Assembly: GCA_002189035.1 (NCBI GenBank)
Contig: NEEC01000013.1
Span: 1,240,001-1,304,000 of the forward strand
Direction of reading: 5' to 3'
Source of the DNA: Utricularia gibba
Taxonomy: Eukaryota > Plantae > Magnoliophyta
Length of the DNA: 64,000 nucleotides
The notes below the pieces were generated by a model. That model was not told the DNA's origin, ran no database searches, and saw only the letters and a list, made by a program, of their open reading frames with translations. Positions 10,639 through 46,483 of the stretch are shown here, in pieces. The position numbers were made by a program, and so were the translations under genes. The stretch's first letter is position 1. Each line of letters starts with the position of its first letter.

Positions 10639-12075
10639 ATGGCTGCTTTGAGGAGTAACGGCTCTGTGCCGTCGCTGCCGCCGCCACGCCCCAGATCACC
10701 GCCGGAGTATCCGGATTTGTATGGGAAACGGAAGGAGTTGGCCAAGGTCCAGATGCTGGAGAGGGAAATTGGTTTTCTAAGGGTATGCTTTTCTTTAAAA
10801 AGCACGCACTCCAGTTAAGCCACAGTTCTTCGGACATGGGAGCTTAGTGCGTGCGTCTTTTAACTATTCCCTTTCGACATAGTAAACGACATAAAAACCA
10901 TACCTTTAGAGTTTTACCCTGAAATGGACAGCACCCCTTTAATTTATTTCGCCACTTCTCTGTTCTTGGTGAGTAATTTTTCATCTCCAGTCTCAAGTAT
11001 GTGAATTTTTTTATTAAGCAGGAGGAATTGAAGTCCGTTGAGGCGCTTGAGCCAGCCTCAGTGTCATGTAAAGAGTAAGCCTTTTCTGTCTGAGTGCTTC
11101 AGTATTGCTGTTTCTAGGGACTTCTGTTGTTGCTATTCTGTTAAAATTCCGAAGAAACAATCGAATGTTTTTTTCTTTTTACTCCACAGGATTGCCGAGT
11201 TTGTGACTGGAAATGTGGATCCTTTCTTACCCACGTGAGACCAGAAATTGATTACAATTTTCAGTATTGAATTTGTGTTTGTGTCCTGGATTTGAGATAT
11301 TTATCTTGCATATTCTCTGCCTCTTTCCGGTATACAGAACCAAGGCGACTCAAAGATCATGTTGCTTCTGGAAATGGATGTGGTATTTGCCTCCCAATCA
11401 TGTTTACTCATTCTCCACTATATGTTTTTCAGCATTGCTGTTACTTCGATGTGGAAGTTTCCTTTGTTTCATGCCTAACCATCGTCTGTCTGTCTGTTTC
11501 CATGAAGCCGGTTGCCACGGCTAGTCATTTCCTGTGTATGCTGCGGTGGCTGCTCCTCCCACACGGAGATTCAATGCTGCTGCAACTGTGACAACATCAG
11601 ATGTGATTCTTGCTGCAGCAAGTGCAACAACATTGGATGTGACTCTTGCTGCTGCAAATGCAACCACATTAAATGTGACAATTGCTGCTGCTGCAGCAAG
11701 ACATGTTTCAGCTGCCGATTACCCAAACCCAAATGCCCTTCCATCTCCTGTGGTAAGAGCAGTTGCTGCAGGAAACCCGATTGTGGCGGGTGCTGCTGCC
11801 CCTGCTCCAGGTGCTGTTCCTTACCATCCTGCTCTTGCTTCCCTAAATGCCCCAAGTGCAGCTGCGTTCCTAAATGTCCACAGTGCAGCTGTGTCCCTAA
11901 ATGCCCAAAGTGCAGCTGCGTTCCCAAATGCCCAAAGTGTAGCTGCGTCCCCAAATGCCCAAAGTGTAGCTGCGTCCCCAAATGCCCAAAGTGTAGCTGC
12001 GTCCCCAAATGCCCCAAGTTCAAGTGCTCTTGTAATTGTTTTAAAAGCTGTTGGTACCCTTGCTGCTTCTGTTAG
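10639..12075 (+). CDS. AGG3: Heterotrimeric G-protein gamma subunit, type C (AGG3/DEP1/GS3-like) with a Cys-rich C-terminal tail; 5 exons
   Basis: ATG at 10639. Exons read PSLPPPRPRSPPEYPDLYGKRKELAKVQMLEREIGFLR / EELKSVEALEPASVSCKE / IAEFVTGNVDPFLPT / TKATQRSCCFWKWM / C-RLPRLVISCVCC...CWYPCCFC. The last acceptor is inferred at AG 11506-11507 and is in frame with ORF 11512-12075. Confidence 0.9.
11842..12018 (+). repeat. Coding 27-bp tandem repeat, six full units plus a partial, encoding PKCPKCSCV
   Basis: Unit approximately CC(T/C)AAATGCCC(C/A)AAGTG(C/T)AGCTGCGT(T/C), repeated in frame in the G-gamma tail. Confidence 0.95.
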
Positions 12076-12359
12076 TAAAACCAGCCCTTGAATCCTTGTA
12101 ATTGTGCATCAGTTTCACCATTTTGTTATTGATGCTTCTGTTCTTAAGGTTTTGGTCTGTGGAGAACTCATCAAGAACAGCACAATAATTCATTTGTTCA
12201 AACAAATGGGGATCCTGCTAAACAAGAACAAGTATATCACTCCTGTTTAGCACAAATCATCGACTCTATAGATGGAGAGCTCAACGTTAGTCATGGTTCT
12301 GGTGCAGGGAACTTCTTGAGAACTGCTGAATGCAACAGAGAAGGAAGGCTAGTTGAACA

Positions 12360-13366
12360 GTCCTAGATCATGGAGCTTCCTGCCATGGTTTCGTCGTCGG
12401 AGTAGCCTAACGAGCATACGAACGAGCATACGAAGACAATGTAGTCATCGTTTTCAGCATCATACACGAACCCTGGATTGTCTGCCCTGCTCCAATGGCA
12501 CGAGGCAATGCACTGGAGTAGGTAGCCGCATCCTGAATCACGGAGTTGGTGTTATCGACAGTGAATGCCGTTGTCATCAGCTCTGATCCTACGGCGCTCG
12601 GGCACCATCCTGGATGAAGAGCCTTGAGCAGCGCAGAGACACCGCGTACATGCGGAGAGGACATGGATGGATGTTCCTGGTGAACTAACTGATAAGGCGT
12701 TAAAACTGAGATCAACATGAAGTAAAATGAACTATCACGGCGACCGGACGGCCTGTCGGATGGACCAACGGCCCCGTCCGCGCGGCCAAGATATTGAAAC
12801 CCAGCAACGGCAATCGGATGGTCGTGACAGAGCACTGGGTTATCATCAAGAGAAACGAAAAAAAAAACATTTTGGCCAAGATCGCAGCATCCATGGCAGT
12901 GACTACCCCCCGGTAACACGTGCACAGACAGCCGTGCTTGATGTATGCCTTCCATGGCCTTCGTAGTCTCGAGGGCTACGAGGTTTTGGATGGAGTCAGC
13001 ACCATCTTCCAGCTACAGTACTACAGTTACATCATCACTTCAGTTTATCAGCAAACCAGAGCACGATAACATGATCCATTTTTGGATACTCGAGCGCCGA
13101 TCAGCTTGTTGCTGCAGTTCGTGTTGCTGACAGGTTGGAGGTGGAGCAGCATGGCCACCATTGGGCTGAAGCACCGATAATCACATTCTGTTAATTAAGG
13201 CGGATCTCCATCCTGCTTTCCCCACCCCAAAAACCAAGTGAGCGTTTCATGTGCACCAATCGGAGGCTGCGCCGTAGCTTCCCGGCTTCGTGTGTACCAA
13301 GTGAGTGTTCTTGCAAGAACAAGTGACAGAAGCGTTGACAATGAAGCTGTAAAACCTCGCTGCCAT
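12360..13366 (-). pseudogene. Collapsed subtilase relic, unit 1
   Basis: Ordered remnants on the minus strand: MAARFYSFIVNA...LVHTKP (ATG 13366), [53 protein letters not shown]...TTAFTVDNTNSVIQDAAT. Large deletions lie between them. Confidence 0.85.
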
Positions 13367-14753
13367 TCCTAGAGAAAGGACAAAATACAGACTGTTTTCT
13401 TTTCAGATGGAAAGGCGGAAGGGCGTTCAGACGAGCTATTGAACCAGCATCTATTCATGCAGTTCATACAAATAAGTCTTATGTTTCACACTATTTACAA
13501 CAATACCACTGTACGGGCATACCTTCTGTAAATCTCCATATTTAATAATCAATAATAATAATAATAACCACAACACAGCCTAGTTTTTGAATTCTTTAAA
13601 TAAAAAAGTCAATAGATAATTTTACAATTTACACATGACTTGTACGGAAAAAGAAACGATGGACAACCCCAAGCTCAATTAGGTCATCCTATCGTATGTG
13701 TCAACTTAACATTATGTGCCTGATTTTTTAATTTTTGCTTTAAATTATGTAGAATAGAATTAATTTTAAAATTTTCTAAATAAATTTAATTTTAAAATTA
13801 TAAATCGTTTTATGAAATAATAAAACTTATGTTATATACTTATAATATAAGAAATTATTTTCTAATTTAATACAATAATATAAGTAAATTTTTAAAGTAT
13901 ATATAGAAAGTGGATTATATAATTCTATTATTAATATTTTCTTTAATTACTGAAATAATAGTTCAAAAACTTTAGTAATTAATAAAGTTAATTATATAAT
14001 CTGATTTTATTATAAGCAAAAAATAATAAAAAAATATACAACAAAAAATATTGTCATAGCCGGGACCGTAGGCTTGGACTCGGGGGCCACCTCCGTGACG
14101 TTATTCTATGACCAGCACCTCTAATATGCCATACAATATTTTAAAAACACGTTGAACATATGATTAAATTATTATTATAATAAATTTAATCTTATTGAAT
14201 AATTTCTTATTTTATATAAAAGATTTATAAAAATAAATATTTTTTTTAAATGAATTGAATTATTCTTCAATTTACTTACAATCGGGATATAATCCTAAGT
14301 TGATATAATGATTTTATAAGACTTATCTTCACTCTTGGATTATGTAGTCAATTGCTATGTTTATAATACTGAAGTATATGTTTTTTTTGTATAGGGTATT
14401 AAGACTTTTTTTAAATTAAGAAGTATAGGTTTAGGGTCTCTTGGATTATGGGTATTATAAAAATTCAAAAAACTTATTATTTATAAATTAAAGTTAACTC
14501 TCTATGTTTTAAGAAATAAAAATAATTTCTTGATTTTATTTTTTAAAATTAAAATCGTTTGTATTTAACAAAACTTTCGATTCGCATTCTTTGATTTAGA
14601 TGGATTTAAATGTTTTTATGTTTGATTTTTCTTTTTATTGAACATGAGTATGGTATAATATAATGTCATTTATTAGGTATACGTCCAAGTTTGGAATGCA
14701 TACAGACAAACATTCAAGGAATCTAAATCCATCTTGTCCGTGTTGTACGGAGA

Positions 14754-17072
14754 CTAGGCAATGGTGAAGGCGATAGGGCTGCGGACGGTCCGTTTGAGGC
14801 ACTTCCAGGTGATGGAACCGAAAGCAGAACTGGGAAGATTCGTGCCGCTCACCTTGAAGGTAACTGTGTACTGATGCTTCTCGCCCTTGGAGAAGAACTT
14901 CAGTGTATCCGGGATCACCTTAACAGTGACGAAGGAGGGCACCGCCACTTCGACCCGGTAGATGAACACTCCGATTTCGACATTGGTCAAGGTTCTTGTG
15001 TAGGAAACTTCCCGGGATGGGTTGAATACGACGGAGAAGGAAGGGTAGTTGAACTGTCCCGGATCTCGGAGCTTCTGGATGTTAGCGCAAGCATTGCTCT
15101 TTTGTGCAATGGCGGCGACCTGGTTGTCGGAGTACCCCAAAGAGCATATGAAGGCTAGGTAGTCGCGGGGGTGGCATCGTACACCAGACCCGGATGGGCT
15201 GCTTTCTCCGGCTGGATATGCCCTGCTCCGATGGCGTAAGGCGTTGCTAGGCCTGAATTAGTAGCTGCGTCTTGAATGGGCGAGTTGGTGTTGTCGAGGG
15301 TGTACGCCGTTGTTATCAGCGCTGATCGTATGGCGCTCGGGCTCCAGTCTGGATGAATGGCGGTGAGCAGGGCGGAGACGCCGCTTACATGGGGACAAGA
15401 CATGGATGTTCCTGATGATGAATCGCATCGTCAAAAACGTACATAAAAAGTAAGTGACATTGAGTTTTCACTGCTTACCGGAGATAATGTTGTACGCCGT
15501 GATACGGGCATCCGATGGCAAATCCGATGGACCGGCGGCCTCTGTCCATGCTGCCAAGATATTAACCCCTGGCGCGGTGATGTCAGGTTTTAAGATCTGT
15601 GGTGTCACGGTATTCGGCCCTCTTGAGCTGAACCCTGCCACCACCGGCGCCGGCTTCACATTCAGAGCAGTTCCGCCGAAGCTCAACACCGCCGTCGGAT
15701 TCGATGTTCCCGCATATATCTTTATGGCACTGCCTTCCAGCTCTCCAACGCTCACTCCTGGCTCCAAGTAAGGATAGGCTTGCACAACCCGCCCTGTACC
15801 CAAATTGTTTGCTACAATAACACCAACACCGCCGGCTCGTTTCACTTCATTCGCCTTTTGACCAGGTGAACTGTTGCCAGCATTACAGACCACCAGCTTT
15901 CCTTTGACGGTGGTAGGGTTCAATGATCCACTCAAGCAAAATGGAGAAGCTGTAGGATAGACTAATCCGACAAGCTGATTCCCCATACCCTGTCCAGTGT
16001 ACAGAGAAATTCCGGTATAAACTGCCCCATTTCCGAGCTTCACGGTCGCCGGAAAAGTTCTATCAATGGTGCTAGCACCAACGGTTGTGATCCATGGCGC
16101 ACTGTTTGTAACTGATCCAGCGGAAGGACCCGAGTTTCCGGCCGAACAAACCACCGTAATCCCCAATTGATTTGCTTGGAAAGAGGCGATCGCGATCGCG
16201 TCACTGTAATAGGGTACGGGTCTGCCGCCAAGAGACAAGGAGAAAACGTTCACGCCGTCGCTTATAGCGACGTTCATGGCGGCGATTATGTCAGCTGAGC
16301 TGCATCCTTGCTCGAAGCAAACCTTGTAAATTGAAATCCTTGCACGGGTAGCCATCCCACGAGCGGTTCCATTGGCTAGTCCAAAGAAACTAGCTTTGGG
16401 CACATATGCCCCCGCCGCCGTGCTCGATGTATGCGTCCCGTGTCCTTCATAGTCTCGAGGGCTATGACGCACTGTCGTCCGATGGTCCGCCTCGTACCCT
16501 TTATAGAAAACTCGAGCTCCAATCAGTTTCTTGTTGCAGTTCTTTTTCGGATCGAAATCATTCGCCTTTTCGCACAGGCCCCGCCACCGTAAAGGGACTG
16601 GTAGCATCCCGGCATCGCTGAAGGATTTGGATTCCGGCCAGACGCCGGAGTCGACGACCCCAATTATCACATTCTGTGACTTAAGGTGGATCTCTATGCC
16701 ACTTTCCCCACCCCAAAAACCAAGCTCCCCTTCAAGCCCAAGAAACAGAGGAGTTCTCGTAGTTTGCAGCTGGTACATGGTGTTCTCGTACACCCCTAGA
16801 ACCGCATCAGAGCGACGCAGCGCATCCAATTCCTCGGGCGTCACCACGGCAGCGTAGCCATGAAACACAGTGTCGTAGGTGTAGAGAATGGCGCCCCTCT
16901 CGGAGGAAGTCACGGAGGTGAAATGATGGGCGTACCAATCGGCATGGGAGGCGTAGCTTGCAGGCTTCATGTGGTCTTTCATGTGTACCAAGTAGGTTTT
17001 CTTGGCAGAGCAAGCGACCAGAGCATTGAGCACAATGCCTATGGCGACGAAGACGTAAACCCTAGACGCCAT
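14754..17072 (-). CDS. Subtilisin-like serine protease (S8A, SBT1-subfamily-like), copy 1; 2 exons, one frameshift in exon 2
   Basis: Signal peptide, I9 propeptide, catalytic D ([10 protein letters not shown]), H ([11 protein letters not shown]) and S (GTSMSCPHV), PA domain and Fn3-like C-terminus. 67-bp intron at 15478-15412. The G-run at 15167-15171 has 5 G where the intact copy 3 has 6. Confidence 0.92.
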
Positions 17073-17861
17073 GGATGAAGAAAGGAGATAGATGTCGTGC
17101 TTCCCCGAACTTCGACGCACAGGCCCTTTTATGCATGCAACTGACACAAATAAGGCTCGTATTTCAAGCTATTCACAAGAATGCCATCCAACATTACATG
17201 TATTTCTTAATATTTTTTCAATGATATTCATATTCAATTATCGAAGCTTGAGCCAAGCTATACTACAGTGGTCATATACTAAGCATCAAGGGAAATGTTC
17301 ATCTTTCCGGTCAGATGCATGGGATCGTTTCCGAGGCGCCACCCAATTTTATGATTATTTGATCCACTAGTTCTATTAAAATATTATTTACTCGTAGTTT
17401 TTGGATTATGAATCGAATTAAACCCATTGTAAGTATAGTATGAAAAATAAACAATTTATTTAATTATAATCATTTTAAATTTCAAATATTTTATAAAATA
17501 TATTGAATTAAACCCCAAAAATTATATATTTGAATTGAATCGGGTTAGTATTAACTATTAAAACGCCGTTATTAGGATTCAAATTTTTCATCGTCTTACA
17601 TTGCGAAGAAGATAATGTTGAGATGGGGCAAATGTGACTTACAAAATGGGGAATAATAAAAAAGAAATAGGTTTGGGGTGTTATAGATTTGAATAATGTC
17701 TGAATTATACAAACAATGAAATTTTAGAATGTAACATCGACCTACACGAGAGGGACTACAATTTTAAAGTGATATGGGGTTCACAATATTGCTTTTTTTT
17801 TATTTTGAAATGTCACATTAAATGGTCTATTTTGTAAGCAAAATATCCCTTGTGCATAGCA

Positions 17862-17933
17862 GCGTTTGTAGTCCAACGGTTAGGATAATTGCCTTCCAAG
17901 CAATAGACCCGGGTTCGACTCCCGGCAAACGCA
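17862..17933 (+). tRNA. tRNA-Gly (anticodon TCC), intact
   Basis: GCGTTTG acceptor stem pairs with CAAACGC. D-arm GTCC/GGAT, anticodon stem ATTGC-CTTCCAA-GCAAT, T-arm CCGGG-TTCGACT-CCCGG. An oligo-T terminator follows. Confidence 0.96.
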
Positions 17934-18008
17934 GATGATATTTTTTTTATGCTAATAAAAAAACAAATCCAATTTTTTGAAATTTCAAAGAAGATTATAA
18001 GTGTATTT

Positions 18009-18339
18009 AAACACGATAGAGATCAGAGTTCCAATCAGGGAATGGGCTGCTCACCCCAGTGCTTTGGAAATCTCATTTGATGGTGTTTTTGAAAAGTATA
18101 TGTAGAATATAGATCATGGAGCTTCCTGTCATGGTTTCGACGTCGGAGTAGCCTACCGAGCATATGAAGGCAATGTAGTTATCATTTGCAACATCATTCA
18201 CGGGCCCTGGACTGTCTGCTTTGCTTGAATGGCACAAGGCATTACATTGGAATAGGTAGCCGCATCCTCAATCACAGAGATGATGTTATCAACATTGAAT
18301 GCCGTCATTATCAGCTCTGATTCGATGGCGGTTGGGCTA
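18009..18339 (-). pseudogene. Eroded unit1/unit2 junction: VIP3 3'-UTR/stop remnant fused to the 3' part of the subtilase relic
   Basis: 18009-18108 matches the VIP3 3' region (aaacacg.tagagat.agagttcca...gctgctcaccccagtgct; agtatatgtagaat). 18109-18339 matches relic 12364-12600. Confidence 0.75.
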
Positions 18340-20660
18340 TGAAGATGGTCAAGTTTATTATCATCGAGTTCGTACTGGTTTAATTGAAAATATGAAAATA
18401 AAGAAACACTTCAAATTTGATTAAATGTCCAGCCTATATGCAAAATGGTTGATATGATGCCCCAAATATGTGTTAACAAATTAAAATGAAAAACAAGATT
18501 AATATTTACCAGTTAAAATCCAGAAATTGGGAAATGTTCTAGAAACAATAAAATTCATTATGAATTTTCAACATAAGTACAACATTTTAAATATTAAACA
18601 GATTAATGATTTATAATACAAAGCTATCGGTAAAGCTTCTTTGTAACATCATATCATCTTCTTTATGCTTTCAGATAGAATTTCATCAACTCTTCTCTAC
18701 ATTCACACCACACCTAGTGAAGGGTAATGGAGATGTACTTTTATAACCACACGTCCCTTACATCTTATCAATCATACTCATTAATGTAAAACTGTCTTGC
18801 TCACCCACAACTTTCAACACTTCACACAAGCATTTCCATCAGAATAATACAACCTTTGTTGACTAGCATCAGCTGTTCACATGCATAATTTCCAGCTTGC
18901 TAGATACATAAGCGATGTCTTCAACATCAGCTACTTCGAGTCAATCACTACTATTGGCCAAGACTAAGTTTAGTTAATTTTCTTTTTTTGTTATATCCAA
19001 TCGTGCACGCATTTTTGTTCAATTTCATTAGAGTCCTGAAGTATATCTATGGGTGCTTTCTTCTGTTAATGAAATACGTACCATTTTCATCAATTGTTCT
19101 GTGAATTTGACAATGGGTATCAGAGCATCATGACCTCATAGAACAATGGATCGTCGTCATCGTTTGTGCAACCACAAATTCTCAAATTCGATGGTCATTA
19201 TGATCACTAGGCCTTATTGATGGAAAAATTCTTATGCTCAAAGGGATTTTGAGAATTGATTGAGAGTGGATTGCCCATGCATGTTGAAGGTGCGATGTTA
19301 GCACTCAAATCTATTGATATGCTTTTCCCCATCATAGTAAAGGTGATCGAAATTGAATGTCACATTATGCAAGAGGATAAGGCAACTTTGGTACTATGGC
19401 ATCACTGGTATCTCCATATTGGATATGAGCGCCTAAATCTATTGATACAAAGCAGATGGTTAATGGCATGCCAAAAGTTGCATTGAGAGCATCTACATGC
19501 ATTCATTGCTTGAATTGAAAAACAACATAGGGAGGCACAAAGCAAAATTAGTACTTGGAGAGATCAAAATCTACTAAAACTTGTCCATACGGATATATGT
19601 TGATCTATTAGCCCTCCAACTACCAGTGAAAAGAGGTATTTCCTGACTTTCATTGATGATTTTAGTAGAAACACTTGGATTTATTTTTTATCAGAGAAAT
19701 CACAAGCTTTCGAATGCTTGAGCTCTCTAAAGTGAAAGTGGAGATAGAATCAGGCATGTTGATCAAAGCCATGAGAGGCGATAGAGGAGGAGAATATCCC
19801 TCAACTGATTTCATAAATTTTTGTGTGGAAAATGGGATAAAGAGATTTCTTACCAATCTTAGAGCACCTCATCTAAACGGAGTAACGCTGCTTGAAATAG
19901 TCAGAGCTATGTTTTCTCATGCGGGGATGCCTAAATTGTTTTGGGTGGAAGCAGTGCAGTGGAGCGACTATCTGTTAAATAGATCAACAGCCACATCTAT
20001 CAGAGATAAAACACTTGAGCTGAAATAGAGCAACTCAAAACCAAGTGTCGAATTATTTTAAAATTTTTGGATGTCTTGCTCATGTACATCTTTCAGAAGC
20101 TGTACAAGAGGATAAGTTTGAAAAGAGGAGCTTTCCATGTGTTTTCATTGGACTCAGTGAGGAATCAAAAGGCTAGAGGCTCTACAATCCTATTTCTGAA
20201 CGCATAGTTATTAGTTTCGAGGAGGACAGCGTTTGGGATTGGAACCATATATCGCATTACCAGCTCCCATACTTGTAGTAGAGGATCCATTCCTCAACCT
20301 GCAGAACCAGAAGGTTCACAACTTGAGGAACCAGCAGTCCTCACTGATGCAAGTACTGAAAAATGAGGGAGTATCCAGCACTAACACATCACTGAGAAGA
20401 TCCCAAAGGCACAGACAACCAGCATCATGGTTGCAAGACTTCATCACATATATTACACATGAAGAAGAATTTGCAAACTTGGTTGCTTTGTTTACAAAAA
20501 TAAACCAGGATCCAGTGACCTTTGAACCTTGCAATTGAGAGTATCCCTTGGCCACAATTTGAGCTTTATGTTTGTTTAGAGAGCCATCTTCCTTGTGCTT
20601 TGTCTTAAAAATCCACTTGGGGCCTATTATTTTTGCTCCAGCAGGTGGTTCTACTTTCAC
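18340..20660 (+). mobile_element. Old, deleted Ty1/copia element (unit 2 copy) inserted in the subtilase relic
   Basis: LTR-like start TGAAGATGG at 18340, tRNA-iMet-type PBS GGTATCAGAGC at 19116-19126. Gag start, then pre-integrase and integrase remnants (FIDDFSR..W, DRGGEY, FWVEAV). An inverted RT fragment KWIFKTK...AKGYSQ lies at about 20525-20660. Confidence 0.8.
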
Positions 20661-20901
20661 CCATGTGTTGTTTTTTTTTTAATAGACTACATTTCTTTAT
20701 CTATTGCTTATCTCCAATGCGGAATTGTGCCATGAGTATTTTCTAAATCATTTAAATAAAAAGTCAATATGATAATATAAATATATTTTTAATATATATT
20801 AAGTAATATAATTTTTAAATTAATCTGCTCTTTAATCACTAATACATTAATTCAAAAAATTTAATAATTTATCAAGTTAGTTACATAATCTGAATGTATT
20901 T

Positions 20902-20902
<1 letters not shown>

Positions 20903-20938
<36 letters not shown>
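20903..20938. repeat. (ATA)12 microsatellite, expanded only in unit 2
   Basis: Direct reading. The paralogous sites in units 1 and 3 lack the long run. Confidence 0.9.
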
Positions 20939-21698
20939 GTAGTAAAATATGTAATAAAAAATATTGTTGGGACCGTACACTAGGACTTGGAGGCCACCTC
21001 GGTGATGTTAGTCTAACACTACTAGCTGTAATGTGCCATAAAATATTTTAAAAACACAATCAACACATTTATCCATTTAGTTAAAACATTTATAAAAAGA
21101 AATATTATTATTTAAATACATTGAATTTATTCTTCAATTTCAATATAAATTTAAATTAATCCGGATATACTCCTAAATTGATCTCATGATTTTAAAACAC
21201 TAATAGACTCTTTTAGAAAATTGGTCGTCTCTCCCCTCTCCCCATAGTAGTAATAATTTTTATCACATGGGTGGCTATGAGTAATCTTTTCCATAGGGAA
21301 TATATACAAAATACCTGCTATGTTTATAATACTGAAATATAGGTATTTTGTATAGGGAATTAAGAAGTAGAGGTTTAGGGTCTCTTTGATTATATTTATT
21401 AATTTTTTTTAAAAAATAAAAGTTAGTCCTTTATATTTTATAAAAATAAAAAGCATTTTTCAAATTTCTATTATTTTTAAAATAAATTTCGTTCGTATTT
21501 AATAAAACTTTGAATTCACAGTCTTCGATTTATTTGGATTTAAATGTAAAGTTTCATTTTTTACTGAACATGAGTGTGATGTCATATCACTTATTGGATA
21601 TGAGCCCAAGTTGGAATGCATACACACAGAGATTCAAGGAATCTCCAGGTAGCATTCGCTAAACCCTAAGGCTTCATTGTGTTCGTGTTGTGCGGAGA

Positions 21699-24016: not shown

Positions 24017-24989
24017 GGATGAAGAAAGAAGATAGATTTCGTGCTTCCCAGAGCTTCGACGCACAGGCCCTTTTATGCATTCAACTGACACAAATAAGGC
24101 TCGTATTTCAAGCTATTCACAAGAATGCCATCCAATATTATATGTATTTCTTAATATTTTTTTAAATGATATTCATATTTAATTACTGGAGCTTGAGCCA
24201 AGTTATACTAGAGTGGTCATAGACTAAGCATCAAGGGTTATGTTCATCAATCTGTCCATCTTTCCGTCACATGCATGGGATTTTATGATTATTTGATCAG
24301 CTTTTTTTACTCGTAGTTTTTGGATTATGAATCAAATTAAATCCATTGTAAGTATAGTATGCAAAATAAAATATAATTATTTAATTTTAATCATTTTAAA
24401 TTTCAAATATTTTATAAAATCTATTGAATTAAACTCTAAACATCATATATTTGAATTGAAATTGAGTTAGTTTTAAAACACCGTTATTAGGATTCAAAAT
24501 TTTCATCTTCTTAGAATCGCGTAGAAGATAATGTTGAGATGCGCAACTGTGACTTACAAGATGGGCAATAATAATTAAAAAAAAGAAATAGGTGTGGGAT
24601 GTATTTGATTAACATTTGAATTATACGAGCAATATAATTTTCGAATTTAACATCAACCTACACGAGAGGGTCCCCAATTTTAAAGTGATACAGGTTTCAC
24701 AATTATACTTTTTTCATTTTAAAAATGGTGTAAAATAAATTTTTTTATCCATAGGAGCAGATATCTATATAATTAATAGCTCTTGTACTAAATTTTAAAG
24801 AAGATTTTAAGTGTAAATGAGTCATAATATTTATCTTTTTTTAAAAAATATTTTAAATACATTATAATTAATTAATAGTTGCATTCTGTTTATGCAACTA
24901 ATATTTTATTAATAAAGTTTTCATAATTTCTCAGCCAATATTCTCCTTTTTGAGGCAGAACAATATCCACGATCAATAATCTCAACCAC

Positions 24990-32539: not shown

Positions 32540-33098
32540 GGTTGGCTAGTTGACATGTCCTAGATCATGGAGGTTCTTGCCATGGTTTCGACGTCAGAGG
32601 CACATTGAATCTCTTTAGTTAGGGACCGGCCGGAGGCACGAAGTACTCGATTGAAAGTACGAGGATCAATTGAAGGCCATAGGCCGGAATGCAATAGGGT
32701 ATGTTGGAGCTCGATCGTTAGGGACCAGTCGGAATGCGGTAGGAAAGAATGCGGGAGTGCGTTTGCGGTAGTTTAGGAAGTACTTGACTTAAAAGGAATA
32801 GGTTGGATTTCATAAACCAACATATTCTTTTTTCTACTCTACGATCATTTCAGCTCTCCGTCGCAACGAGCAGCATAATCACTGTTGGCGAAAAAAAAAA
32901 GAAAAGAATCAAATGCATTGCACGGTATCTGAGCCTAGAAGGCAATGTAGTCATCATTTTTAGCATCATTCACGAGCCCAGGATTGTCTACTTTGCTCCA
33001 ATGGCATAAGGCATTACATTGTAATATGTAGCCACATCCTCAATCAAGGATATGGTGTTATCTGATGTCATAATTTGCTCCGATTCTATGATAGTTGG
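32540..33098 (-). pseudogene. 3' part of the subtilase relic, unit 3, interrupted by insertions
   Basis: Matches 12350-12600 (gtcctagatcatggag..., gcaatgtagtcatc...tagcatcat..acga.ccc.ggattgtct). Confidence 0.75.
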
Positions 33099-36000: not shown

Positions 36001-37639
36001 GTTTTTGGTGAGTTGTGGCACATATAAGACATCATGTAAAAGAATGGAGGAATGATTGTGGGTAAGAGAAGAATTTCCCACACCAACGATGGGTAGTGCT
36101 GAGCCGTCTCCTATTTTCATAGCATCAGTACCTGCATATGGGAGTATGTTATTAAAGACATGTTTCGAACCTGTCATGTGATTGGTGGCACCGGTGTCTA
36201 CGGTCCACTCTGTATCACAAAGAGTGTTGTCCAGTGTTAAGGAGGCCAAAGCTTGAGGGAGTGGTTCACTTGTAGGTTCAGGTTGTGGACCTGGAAGTCG
36301 CCAGCAAATTTTTGCAATATGCCCTTGTACATCACAAATTTGGCAGATCTGATGTTTATATTGTTCACACTCTACAAGTGTCATCCTGCACTTGCCTGGG
36401 GGAGGTGGTGGTGCATGACCCCGCCTATCAAAGGTGCGTGTTGGTGCCTGCTGAGAAGAGTCCTTTGGACTAGTTGTAGATTGTTTTATATGACTTTGAC
36501 GACCTTGAGCTTGGAAGCCTCATCCTTATGAGACAAATTTTGAGTGATTATCATATTGGGTTAGAAAGCCCATCGGTGAGTTTTGAGAGTGAAATTGCTT
36601 CTCTAGGTCTTCATTGATTTTTCGTCAAATCTCAAAGCTGTGTAACTGTGGAATTAAATCTTTGTATGATGGCCGTGGTTCCTTCAGCATGGTGGTGGAG
36701 AATGCATCGTACCCAGGGCAAAGACTAGTTAAGAGAAAATAAACTTTTTCCCCATCAAGAATAATGTCTCCGATGGTAGCCAAGTTGTCACAAACTGTCC
36801 TGAACTGCATCAAATATTCATCAAGCTTTTGATCAGGACTCTTGTGACTTTGTATAAGTTGGTATCGTAGAGCATACCTGCGCTCTTCTGATTTTTGGGC
36901 ATAGGCATCTCGAAGTGTGGACCAGACAGAAGCTACTGTTTCACACCCAATGATCAAAGGCCATGTTTCATTAGAAACTGTGCCAACCATCCAGCTGCGA
37001 AGAAGCCGATCCGAGGTATGCCATTTGGTAAATTCTGCAGATTGTTTTGGGGAGGAAGGGGGATCTTGATCGTCGTAGGCTTGTTCAAATTGTGGTGGTG
37101 GTGGTGGCTACCGTCGAGACCTTGATTTTCTGCAAGACCAAAGACCATCTCCTTCCATAGATTATAGTTTTTGCTGGTGAGTTTCACGGTGATGAAATTT
37201 GCAACAGTGACGGCATTTACGGTAGCCATTGAAGAGAAGACGTGAGGAAGGCGGAAGCTTAGAGGAAATAAATGCTGACCAATGCAAGTGATCAACACTG
37301 CTTTGATACCATAAATAAACCGTGGCTACAATGCCTTGAAAGAATAAAAATGGTGTAATAATTACTACTCAAGATGATTGAAAGCAATTACACGTGAAGA
37401 CTTTTTATAGGCAATGCTAGGTTAGTTCTAAAAATATGGAAGCACGCATGGCATCACCACTTTCTCTCAACCGCCATGGATAAGTCTTGACCATCTCTGA
37501 ACGTTTCCCAAGTGCGGGTTCAGGTGGCATCAACTATATCGTGACTCTGAACGTTTCGTATAGATAAGTCAGTCTCCTTATCTCCCTATCCTTATAACTC
37601 TGTTCTACCTTAATACTCCACTGACCATCTCTTTCAGCA
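33099..37639 (-). mobile_element. Ty1/copia LTR retrotransposon (element 2, Ale/Retrofit-like), non-autonomous
   Basis: LTRs at 33099-33436 and 37312-37639; TSD GTTGG at 33094-33098 and 37640-37644; PBS TGGTATCAAAGC at 37311-37300. Domains gag (TVKLTSKNYNLWKE), protease (WTVDTGATNHMT), integrase (CDLWGPPP) and RT start (KWVFKAKLKPDGSLDRLKARLVAKGY). The RT core is deleted near 33990. Confidence 0.93.
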
Positions 37640-37648
37640 GTTGGGTTG

Positions 37649-38690
37649 TGAAGATAGTCCAATCTATTATTATCGAGTTCGAACTGGTTCAACTACTTCG
37701 AGTCAATCACTAGTCTTGGCCAAGACTAAGTTCACTCAGCTATCTTTTATCTGTTGTGTCCAATCTTGCACGCCATTTTCGCTCAATTCCGTTAGAATCT
37801 TGTAGCGAATTTATGAGCACTTTCTTTTGTTAATGAAATATGTACCATTTTCATCAATTGTATTCTGTGCATTTGACAATTATTATCAGAGCATCATGAC
37901 CTCATAGAACAATAGATCATCTTCATTGTTTGTGCATCCACAAATTCCCTAATTTGATGGTCACTATGATCGGTGGGTCTTACTGATGGAAAATTTCTTG
38001 CACTCAAAGGAATTTTGCGAATTGATTGAGAGAGGGTTGCCCACACATGCTGAAGGTGTGCTATTAACACTCAAATCGCAGAAGGAGTTTAATGAGAAGA
38101 AGATTAGAGATCTAAAGGTAAAGAACTATTTGTTTCAGTCTATAGATCGATGTTACTTGGAAACTATTCTTTGTAAGAATGCTTTTAAGAAAATTTGGGA
38201 AGCTATGACTACAAGATTCTTGGGTAATACATGAGTTAAAAGATCTCATTTGTAGTTATTTAGAAGAGAATTTGTAATCCTTAAAATGAGCAGTGATGAA
38301 AATATCACAGATTATGTTGGAAGTGTGTTTAGAGTTGCAAAAAAAAATGTGCAGCAATGGTGAGCATATGGTTGATAAAAAGGTAGTGGAAAAGATCTTG
38401 CGTTCCCTGATTAATGAGTATGATTAGTTATGTATTCTATTGAGTAATCTAGTAATATGGATGAGCTAACTATTGATGAGCTTCAAGGCTCCTTAGTTGT
38501 GCATGAGCAGAAAATCAAAAGAAACTAGACAAATGGCTCTATAGAACAAGTGCTGATCAATCAAACTAGTGAGATTATCCATAGCATGGGAAGAGGGAGT
38601 CACTTTCATGGTAGAGGCAATGCTAAAAAAAAAAAATAATGGAATGTTATCAATGTCACCAACTTTGTTATGCAGTTGAGAACTTAAACA
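37649..38690 (+). mobile_element. Unit 3 copy of the old copia element found at 18340 (LTR, PBS and gag remnant)
   Basis: LTR and PBS are co-linear with 18340-19200. Gag MENFLHSKEF...DLKVKNYLFQSIDR. The 3' end is approximate. Confidence 0.8.
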
Positions 38691-38799
38691 TGGTTTCATT
38701 ATATCCTATTTTCGTGAGAGTTCTGTTACCTTTTGTGTCTATAAAAGCATTTGTCCATAACTTGTATTGTCATCATCCTATTTTTGTCTATCATACAAA

Positions 38800-39010
38800 T
38801 ACAAGACTGACGTAGCTTCCTAGCTTCATGTGTACCGAGTGTCCTCGCAAGGGCAAGTCACATAAGCATTGATAATGAAGGTGTAAAACCTTGACGACAT
38901 TGCTCGAGAGAGGACAAAATACTGATTGTTTTCTTTTCTGGTGGGAAGGCAGAAGCGCGTTCAGACGAGTCATCGAATCAACATTCTATGCATGCATTTG
39001 ATACAAATAA
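38800..39010 (-). pseudogene. 5' end and promoter remnant of the subtilase relic, unit 3
   Basis: Matches 13270-13480 (gtagcttcc..gcttc.tgtgtacc; gcattga.aatgaag.tgtaaaacc; gaaggc.gaag.gcgttcagacgag). Confidence 0.7.
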
Positions 39011-39033
39011 GACCAATATTTCATACTGTTTAC

Positions 39034-39208
39034 TGTTGAAATTCAGGATCCGATGAATTGGACGAACGCACACATGAAATCCAAGTACACAATAAATATG
39101 AATCATAATAGAAAAAATTAGGTACAACTGATTACTAGTAATCCATAATTTACTATATACTTGATTATTCCATTTTCATTTTTCAATGTGAAATTATGTA
39201 TTCTAATA
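39034..39208. mobile_element. 175-bp insertion with LTR-type ends and a 5-bp TSD; probable solo LTR
   Basis: TGTTGAAA...TTCTAATA flanked by TTTAC at 39029-39033 and 39209-39213. The paralogous empty site in unit 1 has a single TTTAC (ctatttacaacaatacc, about 13491-13507). Confidence 0.75.
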
Positions 39209-40274
39209 TTTACAACAATACCACTGCACCTTATTAATCCTCTTATTTAATAATCAATAATAACCACAATACAACCCATGAGTATTTTCTGAATCATTTA
39301 AATAAAAAGTCAATATGATAATATAAATATATTTTTAATGTATATATATACATTAAATAATATAATTTTTAATTAATCTTTTCTTTATAAGGTTAATCAC
39401 TAATAATTTATAAATTTAATTATATAATCTGAATGTATTTTATTATAATAAAAAATAATAAAATATGTAATAAAAATATTGTTGGGACCGTAAGCTAGGA
39501 CTCGGAAGCCACCTCGGTGACGTTACCCTAACACCATTAGCTGTAATGTGCCATGAAATATTTTAAAAACACGTCGAACATTTAGTAATGAATTTGAATT
39601 AAAATATTTTTATAATAAATTGAATCGTATTTAATAATTTTAATTATATTTTAAAAACATTTATAAAAAGAAATATTATTATTTAAATAAGCTGAATTTG
39701 TTCTTCAATTTAGATATAAATTTAAATTAATCCGGATATACTCCTAGATTGATCTCATAATTTTAAAACACTGATAGACTCTTTTATAGTTTTTATCACA
39801 TGGGTGCCAAAAATCTCAAGGAGTAAAAATGTAGTAGTAAAAAATCTAATACACCTAAAACTGATCTTCACTCTTTGATCATCTAGTCAATATCTGTGTT
39901 TATAATACTGAAATATAGGTATTTTGTATAGGGGATTATGAAGTATAGGTTTAGGTTCTCTTTTACTATGTTTATTAAAAAAATTTTGAAAAACTGAAAG
40001 TTAGTTCTTTATATTTTATAAAAATAAAAATATTTTTCAGATTTCTATTATTTTTAAAATAAAATTTGTTCGTATTTAATAAAACTTTGTATTCACATTC
40101 TTCAATTTATTTGGATTTAAATGTAAAGTTTCATTCTTTATTGAACATGAGTGTGATATCATATCACTTATTGGGTATAAGCCCAAGTTTGGAATGCATA
40201 CACACAGATTCAAGGAATCTCTGGGTAGCATTCGCGAAACCCTAAGGCTTCATTGTGTTTGTGTTGTGCGGAGA

Positions 40275-42597
40275 TTAGGCGATGGTGAAGGCGACGGGGC
40301 TGCGGACGGTCTGTGTGAGGCACTTCCAGGTGATGGAACCGAAAGCGGAACTGGGAAGATTCGTGCCGCTGACCTTGAAGGTAGCTGTATACTGACGCTT
40401 CTCGCCCTTGAAGAAGAACTTCAATGTATCTGGGATCACAGTAACGGTGATGAAGGAGGGCACCTCCACTTCGACCCGGTAGGTGAACACTCCGATTTCG
40501 ACATTGGTCAAGGTTCTTGTGTAGGAAACTTCCCGGGATGGGTTGAATATGACTGAGAAGGAAGGGTAGTTGAACTGTCCTGGATCGACGAGTCTAGGGA
40601 TGTTAGCGCAAGGATTGCTCTTCTGTGCGATGGCGGCGACCTGGTTGTCGGAGTAGCCCAACGAGCATATGAAGGCTAGGTAGTCGCGGGGGGTGGCATC
40701 GTACACGAGACCTGGACGGGCTGCTTTCTCCGGTTGGATATGCCCTGCTCCGATGGCGTAAGGCGTTGCTAGGCCTGAATTAGTAGCTGCGTCTTGAATG
40801 GGCGAGTTGGTGTTGTCGAGGGTGTACGCCGTTGTTATCAACGCTGATCGTATGGCGCTCGGGCTCCAGTCTGGATGAATGGCGGTGAGCAGGGCGGAGA
40901 CGCCGCTTACATGGGGACAAGACATGGATGTTCCTGATGATGAATCCCATCGTTAGAAACAGAGATAGAAAGTGAGTAACATTGAGTTTTCACTGCTTAC
41001 CGGAGATAATGTTGTACGCCGTGATACGGCTATCCGATGGCAAATCCGATGGACCGACGGCCTCTGTCCATGCTGCCAAGATATTAACCCCTGGCGCGGT
41101 GATGTCAGGCTTTAAGATCTGTGGTGTCACGGTATTCGGCCCCCTTGAGCTGAATCCTGCCACCACCGGCGCCGGCTTCACATTCAGAGCAGTTCCGCCG
41201 AAGCTCAACACCGCCGTTGGATTCGATGTTCCCGCATATTGCTTTATTGCACTACCTTCCAGCTCTCCAACGCTCACTCCTGGCAGCACGTAAGGATAGC
41301 CTTCCACAACCCGCCCTGTACCCGGATTGTTTGCTACAATAACACCAACACCGCCGGCTCGTTTCACTTCATTCGCCTTTTGACCCGGTGAAATGTTGCC
41401 AGCATTACAGACCACTAGCTTTCCTCCGACGGTGGTAGGGTTCAATGATCCACTCTCACAAAATTGAGATGTTCCTGTAGGATAGACTAATCCGACAAGC
41501 TGATTCCCCATCCCCGGTCCAGTGTACAGAGAAATTCCGGTATAAACTGCCCCATTTCCGAGCTTCACGGTCGCTGGAAACGTTCTATCAATGGTGCTAG
41601 CAGCCACGGTTGTGATCCATGGCGCGCTATTTGAAACTGACCCGGGGGAAGAACCCGAGTTTCCGGCCGAACAAACCACCGTAATCCCCAGTTGATTTGC
41701 TTGGAAAGCAGCGATTGCGGTCGGGTCACTGTAATAGGGTTGGGGGCCGCTGCCAATAGACAAGGAAAAAACGTCGACGCCGTCGGTTATAGCGGCGTTC
41801 ATGGCGGCGATTATGTCAGCTGAGCTGCATCCTTGCTCGAAGCAAACCTTGTACACTGCAATCCTTGCACGGGTAGCCATCCCACGAGCGGTTCCATTGG
41901 CTAGTCCAAAGAAACTAGCTTCGGGCACATATGCTCCCGCCGCCGTGCTCGATGTATGCGTCCCGTGTCCATCATAGTCTCGAGGGCTATGACGCACTGT
42001 CGTCCGATGGTCCGCCTCGTACCCTTTATAGAAAACTCGAGCTCCAATCAGTTTCTTGTTGCAGTTCTTTTTCGGATCGAAATCATTCGCCTTTTCGCAC
42101 AGGCCCCGCCACCGTAAAGGGACTGGTAGCATCCCGGCATCGCTGAAGGATTTGGATTCCGGCCAGACGCCGGAGTCGATGACCCCGATGATCACATTCT
42201 GTGACTTAAGGTGGATCTCGATCTCACTTTCTCCACCCCAAAAACCAAGCTCCCCTTCAAGCCCAAGAAACGCAGGAGTTCTCGTGGTTTGCAGCTGGTA
42301 CATAATGTTCTCGTACACACCTAGAACCGCATCTGAGCGACGCAGCGCATCCAATTCCTCAGGCGTCACCACGGCAGCGTAGCCATGAAACACAGTGTCG
42401 TAAGTGTAGAGAATGGCGCCCCCGTCGGAGGAAGTCACAGAGGTCAAATGATGGACGTACCAATCAGCAGCAGAGGCGTAGCTTGCAGGCTTCATGTAGT
42501 CTTTCATGTGTACCAAGTAGGTTTTCTTGGCAGAGCAAGCGACCAGAGCATTGAGCACAATGCCTATGACGACGAAGACGTAAACCCTAGACGCCAT
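40275..42597 (-). CDS. Subtilisin-like serine protease, copy 3; intact, 751 aa, 2 exons
   Basis: Exons 42597-41001 and 40933-40275 total 2256 nt, an open frame. All catalytic motifs are present; 67-bp intron. Confidence 0.95.
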
Positions 42598-43413
42598 GGA
42601 TGAAGAAAGGAGGAAGATGCCGTGCTTCCCAGGGGTTCGACGCACAGGCCCTTTTATGCATGCTGCTCACACAAATAAGCCTCATATTTCAAGCTATTCA
42701 CAGGAATGCCACCAGCCGACCATGAATTAATTATCTATTTTATTATTATTTTTAAAATGATATTCATATTTAATTATTGGAGCTTCAGCCAAGCAATACT
42801 ACAGTGCAAATATATTCAGCATCAAGGGATATGTTCATCAATCTGTCCATCTTCCCGGTCACATGAATGGGATCATTTCGATTTTACGATTATTCGATCA
42901 ATTGTTTTTACTAGTTTCGATTTGAAACTATTATTTACTCGTATTTTTTGAATTATGAATCAAATTAAACTCATTGTAAGAATGTATGAAAAATAAAATA
43001 ATTATTTGATTTTAATCATTTTAAATTTCAAATATTTTATAAAATATATTGAATTAAACCCCGAAAATCATATATTTGAATTGAATCTGGTTAGTTTTAA
43101 AATACCGTTATTAGGATTCAAAATTTTCATCTTCTTACAATCACGTAGAAGATAATGTTGAGATGGGCAACTATGACTTATAAGATGGGCAATAATAAAA
43201 AAAGAAATAAGCGTGGGATGTTATAGATTTGATTAATGTTTGAATTCTACAAACAATAAAATTTTAGAAAGTCTCAACCTACACGAGAGGGATTATAATT
43301 TTATAATGATACGGGGTTTCACAATAATATTTTCTTTTCATTTTAATAATGGTATAAAATAAATGTTTTATCCATAGGAGCCATCTAAATAATAATTATT
43401 TTATTAGTCAACG

Positions 43414-43484
43414 GCGTTTGTAGTCCGACCTTTAGGATAATTGCCTTCCAAGCAGTAGACCCTGGTTCGACTCCGGCAAACGCA
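43414..43484 (+). pseudogene. Degenerate tRNA-Gly(TCC) copy
   Basis: Paralog of 17862-17933. The D-loop AACGGT is changed to GACCTT, losing the conserved GG. The T-stem reads CCTGG/CCGG, one base short. No clean oligo-T follows directly. Confidence 0.85.
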
Positions 43485-45166
43485 GCCGTTGTTTTCTAAT
43501 AAATTAAACGCAAATCCAATTTTTTGTTTATTCTAAATTTCAAAGAAGACTATAAGTGTATTTAAATCATAATATTATCTTTTTTATTTTAAATACATTA
43601 TAATTAATTAATAATTGGTTTATGTTCATGACACTAATATTTTATTAATAAAGTTTTTACAATTTCTCTATCAATATTCTCCTTTTTAAGACAGAACAAC
43701 ATGTGCGATTGATCCTTCTATAACCTCAACCACAACGTGGAAGCTGCTTGCTTTAACAAGCTCAGAGGTATGTTCGGACAACTTAATGGCTTCTATGGGG
43801 AATACCCTTCTTGCCCCTGCAAGTGCAGAACATGGAAACTTTGTATCAAGTATAAATTATAATAAAAATAAGAAAGGTTATATGACAGTATAATTTTATT
43901 TTTTTATTATTTTATCTTATATTCAGGATAATTTATCTCATCAATCAAATATTCTATTTTTTTTATTTAATCATTTCTTTTATACTCTTTACCAAATACA
44001 ATCTAAATATATCAATCAATCCAGACAGTAGGAGAACAACGCATTATGATCACCAACGGCTTTATACAAATTGTGCTTCAGCAGCACGTTCTTTGCTTGC
44101 ACAGACATCACTCGTCTCCATTCATTATCACCAATCGATTTACCGTAACAACAATGAGTAGGCGAAAAGCCTCAGAGATGGCAGAACAAAGGTTTGCCGT
44201 AGCAAGAAAGAGATACACACAGCTGTAAAGATAAACACGAATAAGAAAAAGAGAAACTTCAAAGCCCAAACACATTCTTAGAGTCTACTTGGTAGCCAAT
44301 GCATGGACCCCCTGGCGGGCGTGCAGCCAATTAGGGTTGCAGCCGGTCCCAAATTGAACGGTTTTTTAGAATCATTGGTTCATAAACCTGTGTTTCACTA
44401 TTCACTTCGATTTCGATTTTAAAGATTAATTTCTAAACTGTTATGAATGCTTGTACAACATGTCATTTTTTAAAAGATTTTTAAGACTCTCATAATGCTT
44501 GTTAAGAATATTTAAAAACGATCTTGAAGATAGATAGTGTTTTTTAAGCAATCACATAAGTTATTGAATATGTGTAGAAACATCATTTTTGTAAATGTTT
44601 TTTTAAAATTTTCTTAACAATTATACCTGAAATCATATAAAAACAAATACAATAATTCATTGATTTCGAATCGTCAGTTCTGCACAAATCGGAATCACAG
44701 TTTTTTGATTCCAAATATCTATCAAAACCAAAACTATACAGATATTCAAATTCCAAAACGGTTCCGGTTCCAACCGATTACAAATTTATTGGCAATGCCC
44801 ATTGCTTAAGCCTTCAACTTCAGCTGCAAGCCACGGTAGCAAACATGGAAAACTACGCAGAAACCAGTCGTGAGATGGCATCGTTTCATATTGTTGGATA
44901 CTGAACATCAGTTGGTATGTCAAATTTTAAGGACAGGCAGAGCATCTTGTTGATGATTTGGAAACTTCACTTTACAGTTCACGTCACCCGTGCGATTCAA
45001 GGCAGTTGACCGGAACCAACAGTCAGTTCTAGGGGCAATTTGAAACACAGAATACAAAATTCAAACACGGTAGAGATTAGAGTTCCAGTCAGGGAAGGGG
45101 CTGCTCACCCCAGTGCTCTGAAGCAAACCAGGGTCAGAAAGCAACAGCATCATTTGGATATGTTTT

Positions 45167-46483
45167 TCAAGAGTATATGTAGAATGACAAACTCTTGTCA
45201 TCAGAAACACTGGCAAGCAAGCATGATCTCACATCTGTCTTCAACGGGGGTCCAAAGGCGACTGCCCATACCTGGGCGGTGTGGCTGGTCATGATCTGGG
45301 AAGCTGCTCTCATTTTCAGATCCCAGATTCTAACACTATTGTCGCTTGAACCGGTTGCAACCGCAGCCCCATCAGGTGAAGCATCGACACTCAGCACCCA
45401 ACTAGAGTGACCAGACAAAGATGTGATCAAGGTCTTCCTCTCAGAGTCATGGATTTGCACAGTAGTGTCGTCTGAGGCAGAGAATAGGACCCTCGAGTCA
45501 AGAGGTGAGTAGACAATGCTTCGAACTGGAGAGGTATGACCTTCCAAGTTGTGCATGAACTTGGCACGAGCCACATCAAAAACGGAGATGGTACCATCCA
45601 TCAAGCCACAAGAGATTTGTCTCCCATCAGGGCTCCACGCCACTGAAAGGGCAAACCTCTTGCTCCTAACTTTCTCAGATGGTTTTGAAGCTTCGGGAAC
45701 TTCCAAGGTATCTATTAATTTCCATTCAGCGGTATCCCACAGCTTCACAGAACCACTACCACCTCCAGCGGCAGCCAATATCGTACCCTGTGTCACAAAA
45801 TGAAGCATTACGCGCATATTTCAGTGAGGGTACTGGAAATTCAGCTAACTCCAAGAATTATAGATAGAAGGCCAAAACGGGATGACTTATTACACGATCC
45901 AGGAGTTGATCAACATTCATACCACATAAGAATAAGCAGTTTTCAGGAATCAGCATCCAACAACTCCATATATGTTAATAATAGAGTCTGTTCTTCTACC
46001 TAATGAACATAACGCACTTAACCCAGTTCGATAAAAAGCCCCATCAACACGAAACCGACCAAGAAGTCTACATTCAAAGCTTTTGCGCAGGTATCTAACA
46101 AACTATAAATAATTTTCCAGAAACTCGCCTAAACCAGTCGATACCTGCGGGTTGAAACGTAGCTGCCAAACTTCCGAAGGAGGAGCCTCAAGGGTAGCAA
46201 CTGTATTGTTGGTGGCAATATCAAAGACCCTTACGAAGCTGTCAATGGAGGCGGACGCTGCGATTCTCCCAGACGGATGCGCCGCCACGGAAACGACGCC
46301 GAGGCAGTGACCAGTGTTCGTGCGCAGGTTCTGTGGGCCTTCGGGATTCCACAACTTCACCGTCTCATCAAGCGAGCCAGTCAACAGCAGCGGAGGCGAT
46401 TCTTCCGTCGCCGGCACCCACGCTGCCGTCCATAGGGAATCTTCGTGTGCGTTCTGGACGCTGTCTAGTGGCGATAGCTTCAT
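45167..46483 (-). CDS. VIP3: WD40 protein VIP3/SKI8/WDR61 (PAF1 and SKI complexes), 2 exons, 319 aa
   Basis: MKLSPLDSVQNAHEDSLWTAAW...LLTGSLDETVKLW, GHCLGVVSVAAHPSG, GHSSWVLSVDASPDG. Exons 46483-46145 and 45787-45167. Confidence 0.93.

Follow-up and report, generated by a model that had tools for sequence, protein, structure and literature searches.

A three-unit subtilase array in Utricularia gibba with a preserved duplication junction between two flanking genes

How did three subtilase genes of Utricularia gibba come to stand in tandem between two other genes, and how much of the founding event can still be read in the DNA? The locus lies in a stretch of 64,000 nucleotides (GenBank assembly GCA_002189035.1, contig NEEC01000013.1, positions 1,240,001 to 1,304,000 of the forward strand), which is referred to below as the window and to which all coordinates belong. 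The array is bracketed by a type-C G-gamma-like gene on the left and a VIP3/SKI8-like WD40 gene on the right. A microhomology-mediated duplication with breaks in the last exon of each flanking gene is well supported as its first step.

The array and its founding junction

The window represents nuclear DNA of a plant. The unit layout was obtained by a self-BLAST of the whole window against itself. Three diverged tandem units on the same strand were recognized: U1 (11710-18109), U2 (18110-26391), and U3 (31945-45307), the last two being parted by a Ty1/Copia element (26392-31939). The matches on which this layout is based pair 11710-12402 with 31958-32599, 14317-18011 with 39856-43566, 14353-17810 with 21316-24724, 20730-24773 with 39276-43393, and 25141-26390 with 44013-45287. 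Every unit carries a minus-strand subtilase gene (SBT1, SBT2, and SBT3, respectively) with a degraded subtilase relic to its left, as detected by Pfam and tblastn. U1 comprises the parental G-gamma tail, the relic, SBT1, a tRNA-Gly gene, and remnants of an internal VIP3 copy (VIP3'). U2 consists of a truncated relic, an insert common to U2 and U3 (18927-19311), a Copia reverse transcriptase fragment at about 20316-20660, SBT2, and VIP3' (24788-26391), its tRNA gene having been deleted. U3 contains a copy of the G-gamma tail, a relic interrupted by a second Copia element, SBT3, a degenerate tRNA-Gly gene, and the parental VIP3 end. Besides these, no further non-transposon coding sequence was found in the three units. 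A head-to-tail array with three old copies is thereby confirmed, and the three-unit order from G-gamma to VIP3 proposed earlier from the letters of the DNA alone (the sequence-only reading) is borne out.

A single unit wrongly expanded to three during assembly would give a superficially similar picture. Repeats are a generic risk in long-read assemblies, and the frameshifts described below are found in C homopolymers, where long-read consensus errors typically occur. However, the copies differ by 5-20%, have different indels, and bear unit-specific Copia insertions, each with its own target duplication; the states of the tRNA and the relic also differ among the units. The divergence and the unit-specific insertions argue that the array is not an assembly duplication, and we regard such an artefact as extremely improbable.

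The junction between U2 and U3 (31945-31963) was read after in silico removal of the intervening Copia element 1 and one copy of its GTTGT target duplication, which is located at 26387-26391 and 31940-31944. The VIP3' end (TCATGATCTGAGA) is followed by AGCTAC at 31958-31963, and the sequence continues into the G-gamma tail copy. The 30 bases to the left of 31958 align without gaps to VIP3 up to position 45307 (25 of 30 identical), and from 31958 rightwards the sequence aligns to the G-gamma tail from position 11710. The position equivalent to 45307 is joined head-to-tail to the position equivalent to 11710. The hexamer AGCTGC is present at both parental sites (11710-11715 and 45302-45307), the junction copy being AGCTAC. 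Both these hexamers and the VIP3-to-G-gamma junction had been named in the sequence-only reading and were confirmed by the sequence; the junction sequence places the breakpoints at the AGCTGC sites. When breakpoint pairs were picked at random from the two regions concerned, microhomology of at least 6 bp occurred with a frequency of 0.0018. A word-7 BLAST of the 300 bp to either side of the parental breakpoints yielded no in-register extended homology and only scattered words of 7-12 bp. The 6-bp microhomology and the lack of longer similarity at the breakpoints therefore indicate that the first duplication was non-homologous and guided by microhomology, which supports the microhomology-mediated event suggested earlier.

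The G-gamma gene was cut 122 codons and the VIP3 gene 47 codons ahead of the stop. The internal G-gamma and VIP3 tails stand head-to-head and lack a promoter and 5' exons. The G-gamma tail copy (31958-32599, plus strand), likewise devoid of a promoter and 5' exons, shows a Kimura two-parameter (K2P) distance of 0.18-0.19 to its parent. As a separate observation, this dead tail copy in U3 (31958-32275) is open to the same stop as the parent through an internal compensated double frameshift.

In this first step, which the junction shows, a segment reaching from inside the G-gamma last exon to inside the VIP3/SKI8 last exon was duplicated head-to-tail by a non-homologous join guided by AGCTGC. 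Its cargo was an old subtilase relic, one SBT1.8-like gene, and one tRNA-Gly gene. With this join, intact parental genes remained at both ends of the array, and two promoterless tails came to stand head-to-head at the junction. The join could have been produced by alternative end joining between sister chromatids or by replicative template switching, which are indistinguishable here.

Copia element 1 (26392-31939, plus strand) was considered as the maker of this junction and rejected. The element has its own 5-bp target duplication (GTTGT), and VIP3' is gapless across the empty site. It is also too young, the divergence (K) between its long terminal repeats (LTRs, 26392-26863 and 31478-31939; K2P 0.083) being set against about 0.19 for the junction. 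Its domains are Pol_BBD, SH3_retrovirus, and RVT_2. The element was inserted 13 bp from the duplication junction, a coincidence of about 0.6% when calculated post hoc, for which no mechanism is suggested.

The eroded boundary and the third unit

At the boundary between U1 and U2 (18009-18109), two remnants of the VIP3 3' end are found at 18009-18063 and 18084-18108, bordering on the relic at 18110. U1 tracks U3 as far as the position equivalent to 43566 and then passes into these VIP3 pieces, of which 18009-18063 corresponds to 45063-45117 (93%) and 18084-18108 to 45161-45185 (92%). At 18110, which corresponds to 12364 and 32561, the relic takes over directly. The boundary reads ...GTAGAATA immediately followed by TAGATCATGG, with an overlap of at most 1-4 ambiguous bases. 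In addition, the VIP3' copies of U1 and U2 have in common about 10 extra bp (TTGGAAAnCTCA) that are absent from the parental VIP3. From these remnants, the boundary looks like the same junction as that between U2 and U3, reduced by deletions; to derive it, a 1.5-kb deletion with AAA common to its ends is required, and about 0.8 kb must have been lost across the junction. An eroded VIP3-to-relic junction had been placed at about 18009-18110 by the sequence-only reading: the VIP3' remnants abutting the relic are present there, and the junction itself has been lost.

The divergence of the far flanks was used to place the second step in time. K2P values are 0.18-0.19 between the parental G-gamma tail and its copy, 0.20 between VIP3 and VIP3' of U2, 0.186 between the U2- and U3-specific segments (18927-19311 versus 37689-38077), 0.21 between U1 and U3 at 13273-13498, and 0.16 between U2 and U3 beyond the tRNA. 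As these values are all alike (K 0.16-0.21), the second step would have closely followed the first. Soon after the first duplication, a misaligned homologous exchange between the two units would have added a third unit together with a second copy of the junction.

Structural characters of the left parts of the units bear on this step. U2 and U3 have the same truncation point of the relic (at about subtilase residue 556) and the same sequence beyond it, where U1 continues as relic. Both also contain the 385-bp insert (18927-19311 in U2 and 37689-38077 in U3), which is absent from U1. The common truncation and following sequence are what unequal exchange predicts, since the left part of the middle unit would then come from the right-hand unit. 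A second event that duplicated only the left unit would not predict this pattern of truncation and insert.

Such an independent event was nevertheless weighed. Two non-homologous duplications could have occurred, the second of which copied most of the left unit with its own breakpoints, equivalent to 45185 in VIP3' and 12364 in the relic, so that the U1/U2 boundary would be a primary junction rather than an eroded copy. The overlap of at most 1-4 ambiguous bases and the lack of any G-gamma tail remnant at the boundary are compatible with this, as is the closest similarity of the U2 SBT promoter and C-terminal part to U1. However, the whole of U2 would then be copied from U1, although U2 has its relic truncation and the 385-bp insert in common with U3 and not with U1; the SBT 3' flank of U2 is also closest to U3. 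A separate 1.5-kb deletion in U1 would be needed under either model. Two independent duplications are thus considered unlikely.

Several points weigh against a firm assignment of the third unit to unequal exchange. The U1/U2 boundary is now without an AGCTGC site and without any G-gamma tail, so the identity of the two junctions is inferred rather than seen. The 230-bp relic core is star-like: its informative sites are distributed about 29:17:30 after about 10 leading non-homologous U2 sites were discounted by eye (29:27:31 in the whole alignment), and substitutions do not pair U2 with U3. The insert shared by U2 and U3 could also have moved by gene conversion, and later conversion blurs the signal of a hybrid unit. 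This signal is itself mixed, the structural insert in the left part and the 3' flank of U2 being like U3, and the U2 promoter being closest to U1. Indel sharing among the 3' and 5' flanks of the units is uninformative without an outgroup. Unequal homologous exchange, which the sequence-only reading had invoked as crossing-over to three copies, is therefore favoured on account of the VIP3' remnants, the shared indel, and the truncation and insert common to U2 and U3; it is not proven, as conversion blurs the signal.

Decay, exchange and selection within the units

In a third step, the array decayed. The 1.5-kb deletion and the loss of about 0.8 kb would have left about 100 bp of the U1/U2 junction. 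Two Copia elements and other fragments were inserted, U2 lost its tRNA and that of U3 degenerated, and single-base deletions arose in SBT1 and SBT2, unless these are assembly errors. The canonical tRNA-Gly(UCC) gene of U1 is located at 17862-17933 on the plus strand (ARAGORN and sequence). The copy in U3 (43414-43484, plus strand) is degenerate, with loss of the D-loop GG and a 1-nt deletion in the T-stem, and the gene is missing from U2 owing to a deletion of about 140 bp at about 24780. The presence of the tRNA in U1 and U3 and its absence from U2, as claimed earlier, agree with the ARAGORN results; only the U1 copy is canonical.

The subtilase relic predates the amplification. Relic 1 (12259-13366, minus strand) is a degraded subtilase pseudogene with an internal deletion, identified by tblastn with SBT3, a weak Pfam S8 match, and DNA matches. 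Its shorter copies were located by DNA matches at 18142-18338 in U2 and at 32453-32572 and 32931-33098 in U3. Relic 3 is interrupted by Copia element 2 (33099-37638, minus strand; target duplication GTTGG; LTR K2P 0.109), for which U2 shows the empty site. The assignment to Ty1/Copia follows from the LTR pair, the 5-bp target duplication, and the gag, integrase, and RVT_2 domains in Copia order. Judged by their LTR divergences (0.083 and 0.109), the two insertions are roughly half as old as the array. If a rate of 7e-9 per site per year is borrowed, the insertions may, very roughly, date to about 6-8 million years and the array to about 13 million years.

The subtilase genes are all encoded on the minus strand: SBT1, an SBT1.8-like gene, at 14754-17072 (intron 15478-15412), SBT2 at 21699-24016 (intron 22422-22356), and SBT3 at 40275-42597 (one 67-bp GT-AG intron, 41000-40934). 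The joined exon model was used for comparisons within the window, and exon 1 was used for database searches. SBT3, with 751 codons (751 aa), is the only copy with an open frame as assembled and has the full subtilase domain set in that frame: I9, S8 with D/H/N/S present, PA, and an Fn3-like domain. The catalytic D/H/N/S residues, a signal-peptide-like N-terminus, and the I9 and PA domains are kept in all three genes. As assembled, SBT1 lacks one base of a C-run at about 15171/15172 (codon 612) and reaches a stop four codons further on. SBT2 lacks one base at about 22285/22286 (codon 555) and another at about 22116/22117 (codon 612), the latter deletion being shared with SBT1. These truncations would take away the Fn3-like C-terminal domain. 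Because all three deletions lie in C homopolymers, consensus error is possible.

The nearest database relatives of SBT1 exon 1 (15477-17072) are SBT1.8 proteins of Lamiales with 58-60% identity, the top match being Genlisea aurea at 60%. The Lamiales affiliation guessed from the DNA alone is consistent with these matches. Nothing closer than 60% was returned by the protein database search with this exon, hence no independent sequence bears on the frameshifts. The SBT1.8-like lineage found here is either fast-evolving or poorly sampled. The 67-bp intron is located directly 5' of the catalytic serine codon. A new local gain of this intron was considered and rejected: in other plants, the unspliced ORF (open reading frame) calls of SBT1.8 relatives terminate at the same ..NIMSG position, and a shortened intron remnant is present near 12650 in relic 1. 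The intron is therefore ancestral to the clade.

Exchange among the three genes after the amplification is a point added beyond the sequence-only reading. Within the SBT genes and about 1 kb around them, identity is 0.90-0.99, and the closest pair switches along the sequence; sliding identities reach 0.97-0.99 in alternating pairs. Permutation of odd-one-out sites in the coding part revealed 96 runs among 216 informative sites, far below expectation, with a longest run of 18 (both P < 1e-4); the longest run in the whole core is 20 (P < 1e-4). The synonymous divergence (dS) of the SBT coding sequences is 0.115-0.118, about 60% of the flank divergence (K 0.16-0.21). The significant mosaic and the dS below flank divergence therefore point to gene conversion, and these patterns are taken to show that sequence has been exchanged among the three SBT genes, including about 1 kb to either side of them. 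In this fourth step, the genes with their flanks of about 1 kb went on exchanging by conversion, which left a patchwork much more alike than the rest of the units. Such conversion limits what gene trees of the three SBT copies can tell. Taken as a whole, the four-step explanation, from the microhomology-guided duplication to continued conversion, is regarded as probable.

Might the array have been kept by selection for more, or more varied, secreted protease, possibly serving prey digestion in a carnivorous plant of Lamiales? The estimated ratio of non-synonymous to synonymous change (omega) is about 0.16 in the SBT1 lineage, about 0.44 in SBT2, and about 0.36 in SBT3 (P from 4e-8 to 1e-3 versus the neutral expectation), so that non-synonymous changes are below neutral expectation in all three lineages. 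Given this bias towards synonymous changes, either the copies were under constraint during most of their history or a constrained copy overwrote them repeatedly. The retained catalytic residues, signal-peptide-like N-termini, and I9 and PA domains are also in line with protease selection. In Byblis, another carnivorous member of Lamiales, the proteases detected in digestive fluid are of the S8 subtilisin-like type (PMC12096042). However, SBT1 and SBT2 are frameshifted ahead of the Fn3-like domain as assembled. In none of the three SBT lineages does omega exceed 1, and nothing in them points to diversifying selection. Constraint can be mimicked when an intact copy is the donor in conversion, a process that homogenizes instead of diversifying. 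Moreover, tandem arrays of subtilases are common in non-carnivorous plants. No paper linking Utricularia with subtilases was found in literature searches. Retention of the array by protease selection is accordingly doubtful, and the selection for protease dosage or diversification suggested in the sequence-only reading is not shown, given purifying omega values of 0.16-0.44, two frameshifted copies, and homogenizing conversion. A stronger form of this idea, in which all three proteases work, the C-run frameshifts are long-read consensus errors, and the three copies are held by selection for secreted-protease dose in the traps of a carnivorous member of Lentibulariaceae and kept alike via conversion, is quite improbable. 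If true, it would tie a datable, mechanistically resolved amplification to digestive function. The array gives no evidence yet for proteases serving carnivory.

Flanking genes, neighbouring features and known systems

The left flanking gene (10639-12075, plus strand) was recognized from its ORFs and tail composition as a putative type-C (AGG3/GS3/DEP1-like) G-gamma gene. Its ORFs include an N-terminal exon, whose motif we take to resemble that of AGG3, and an exon with DPFL, to be compared with the DPLL-type motif of the central G-gamma domain. The Cys-rich last exon (about 11520-12075) contains the AGCTGC breakpoint (11710-11715). The tail has 34% Cys, a 9-aa repeat occurring six times, and a single large last exon. 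In published type-C G-gamma proteins, the C-terminal tail has 19-38% Cys and short repeats and is encoded mostly by the fifth exon (PMC3508898); the window gene agrees with this description in Cys content, repeats, and one large last exon. Pfam and PDB searches with single G-gamma exons returned no match, and the similarity to G-gamma clusters in the Atlas (score 0.81-0.83) is a lead only. The provisional G-gamma name thus draws on the tail composition, the published type-C description, the Atlas lead, and the N-terminal motif. The repeats of the tail are also visible in the DNA as 27-bp tandem repeats at 11839-12019, which encode CSCVPKCPK six times.

The right flanking gene (45167-46480, minus strand) is a VIP3/SKI8-like WD40 gene, of which two coding exons were seen (Pfam WD40). 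Its AGCTGC breakpoint (45302-45307) is located in the last exon, 47 codons ahead of the stop. Residues 53-209 match residues 148-297 of the 305 residues of WDR61/SKI8 in one stretch (E = 6e-43). WDR61/SKI8 is the best co-linear solved relative, and the alignment reaches the C-terminus of the chain. The gene is co-linear with SKI8, a seven-blade WD40 protein of about 300-320 aa. Arabidopsis VIP3 is a member of the WDR61/SKI8 family.

Other features were noted in the window. A tandem pair of Na_Ca_ex (cation exchanger) genes (2577-4548 and 6266-8238) is 77.5% identical (K2P 0.27) and predates the subtilase array; its second copy, divided between two overlapping ORFs (6406-7800 and 7601-8257), is probably frameshifted. 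The whole G-gamma to VIP3 interval is bracketed by AT-rich sequence of about 450 bp that occurs as a direct repeat at 8390-8843 and 46680-47109 (70% identity), perhaps a dispersed repeat; no link between this repeat and the subtilase array was found. An uninterrupted ORF of 477 aa on the minus strand (52455-53888) has a DDE_Tnp_4 domain of the PIF/Harbinger-type transposase (E = 2.7e-36).

A two-step origin of arrays, with a non-homologous first duplication followed by homologous unequal exchange, is established for yeast CUP1 (PMC4232551). The array in the window resembles CUP1 arrays and copy-number gains by microhomology-mediated break-induced replication (MMBIR) or fork stalling and template switching (FoSTeS) in its head-to-tail units, the number of which then rises. 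It also resembles them in a first junction that joins two unrelated single-copy sites with an overlap of a few bases and no filler, and in flanking genes truncated in the internal copies only. The array differs from CUP1 in its old age (K about 0.19), in the erosion of one junction, and in a second step that is inferred only. The junctions of CUP1 mostly have little or no homology, whereas that in the window has 6 bp. With the concerted evolution of tandem paralogues it shares a patchwork of alternating nearest neighbours, a genic dS well below the divergence of the flanks, and a frameshift shared within a converted patch. It differs from other such cases in having three copies only and in conversion limited to the gene and about 1 kb. 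The encoded proteins are like plant subtilases (S8A) of the SBT1.8 clade in I9, S8 with an inserted PA, the Fn3-like C-terminus, and the same intron position. They depart from other members of the clade in the 58-60% identity to their nearest relatives and in the frameshifts of two of the three copies as assembled.

The array is a well-preserved case of a known class of events and leaves the mechanisms of duplication as known unchanged. Despite a divergence of about 19%, its first, rare step can still be followed at the level of single bases, since the two breakpoints are located in slowly evolving coding exons. Beyond this step, the array shows the usual afterlife in a deletion-prone small genome, comprising junction erosion, retrotransposon insertions, loss of redundant tRNAs, and conversion confined to the genes.

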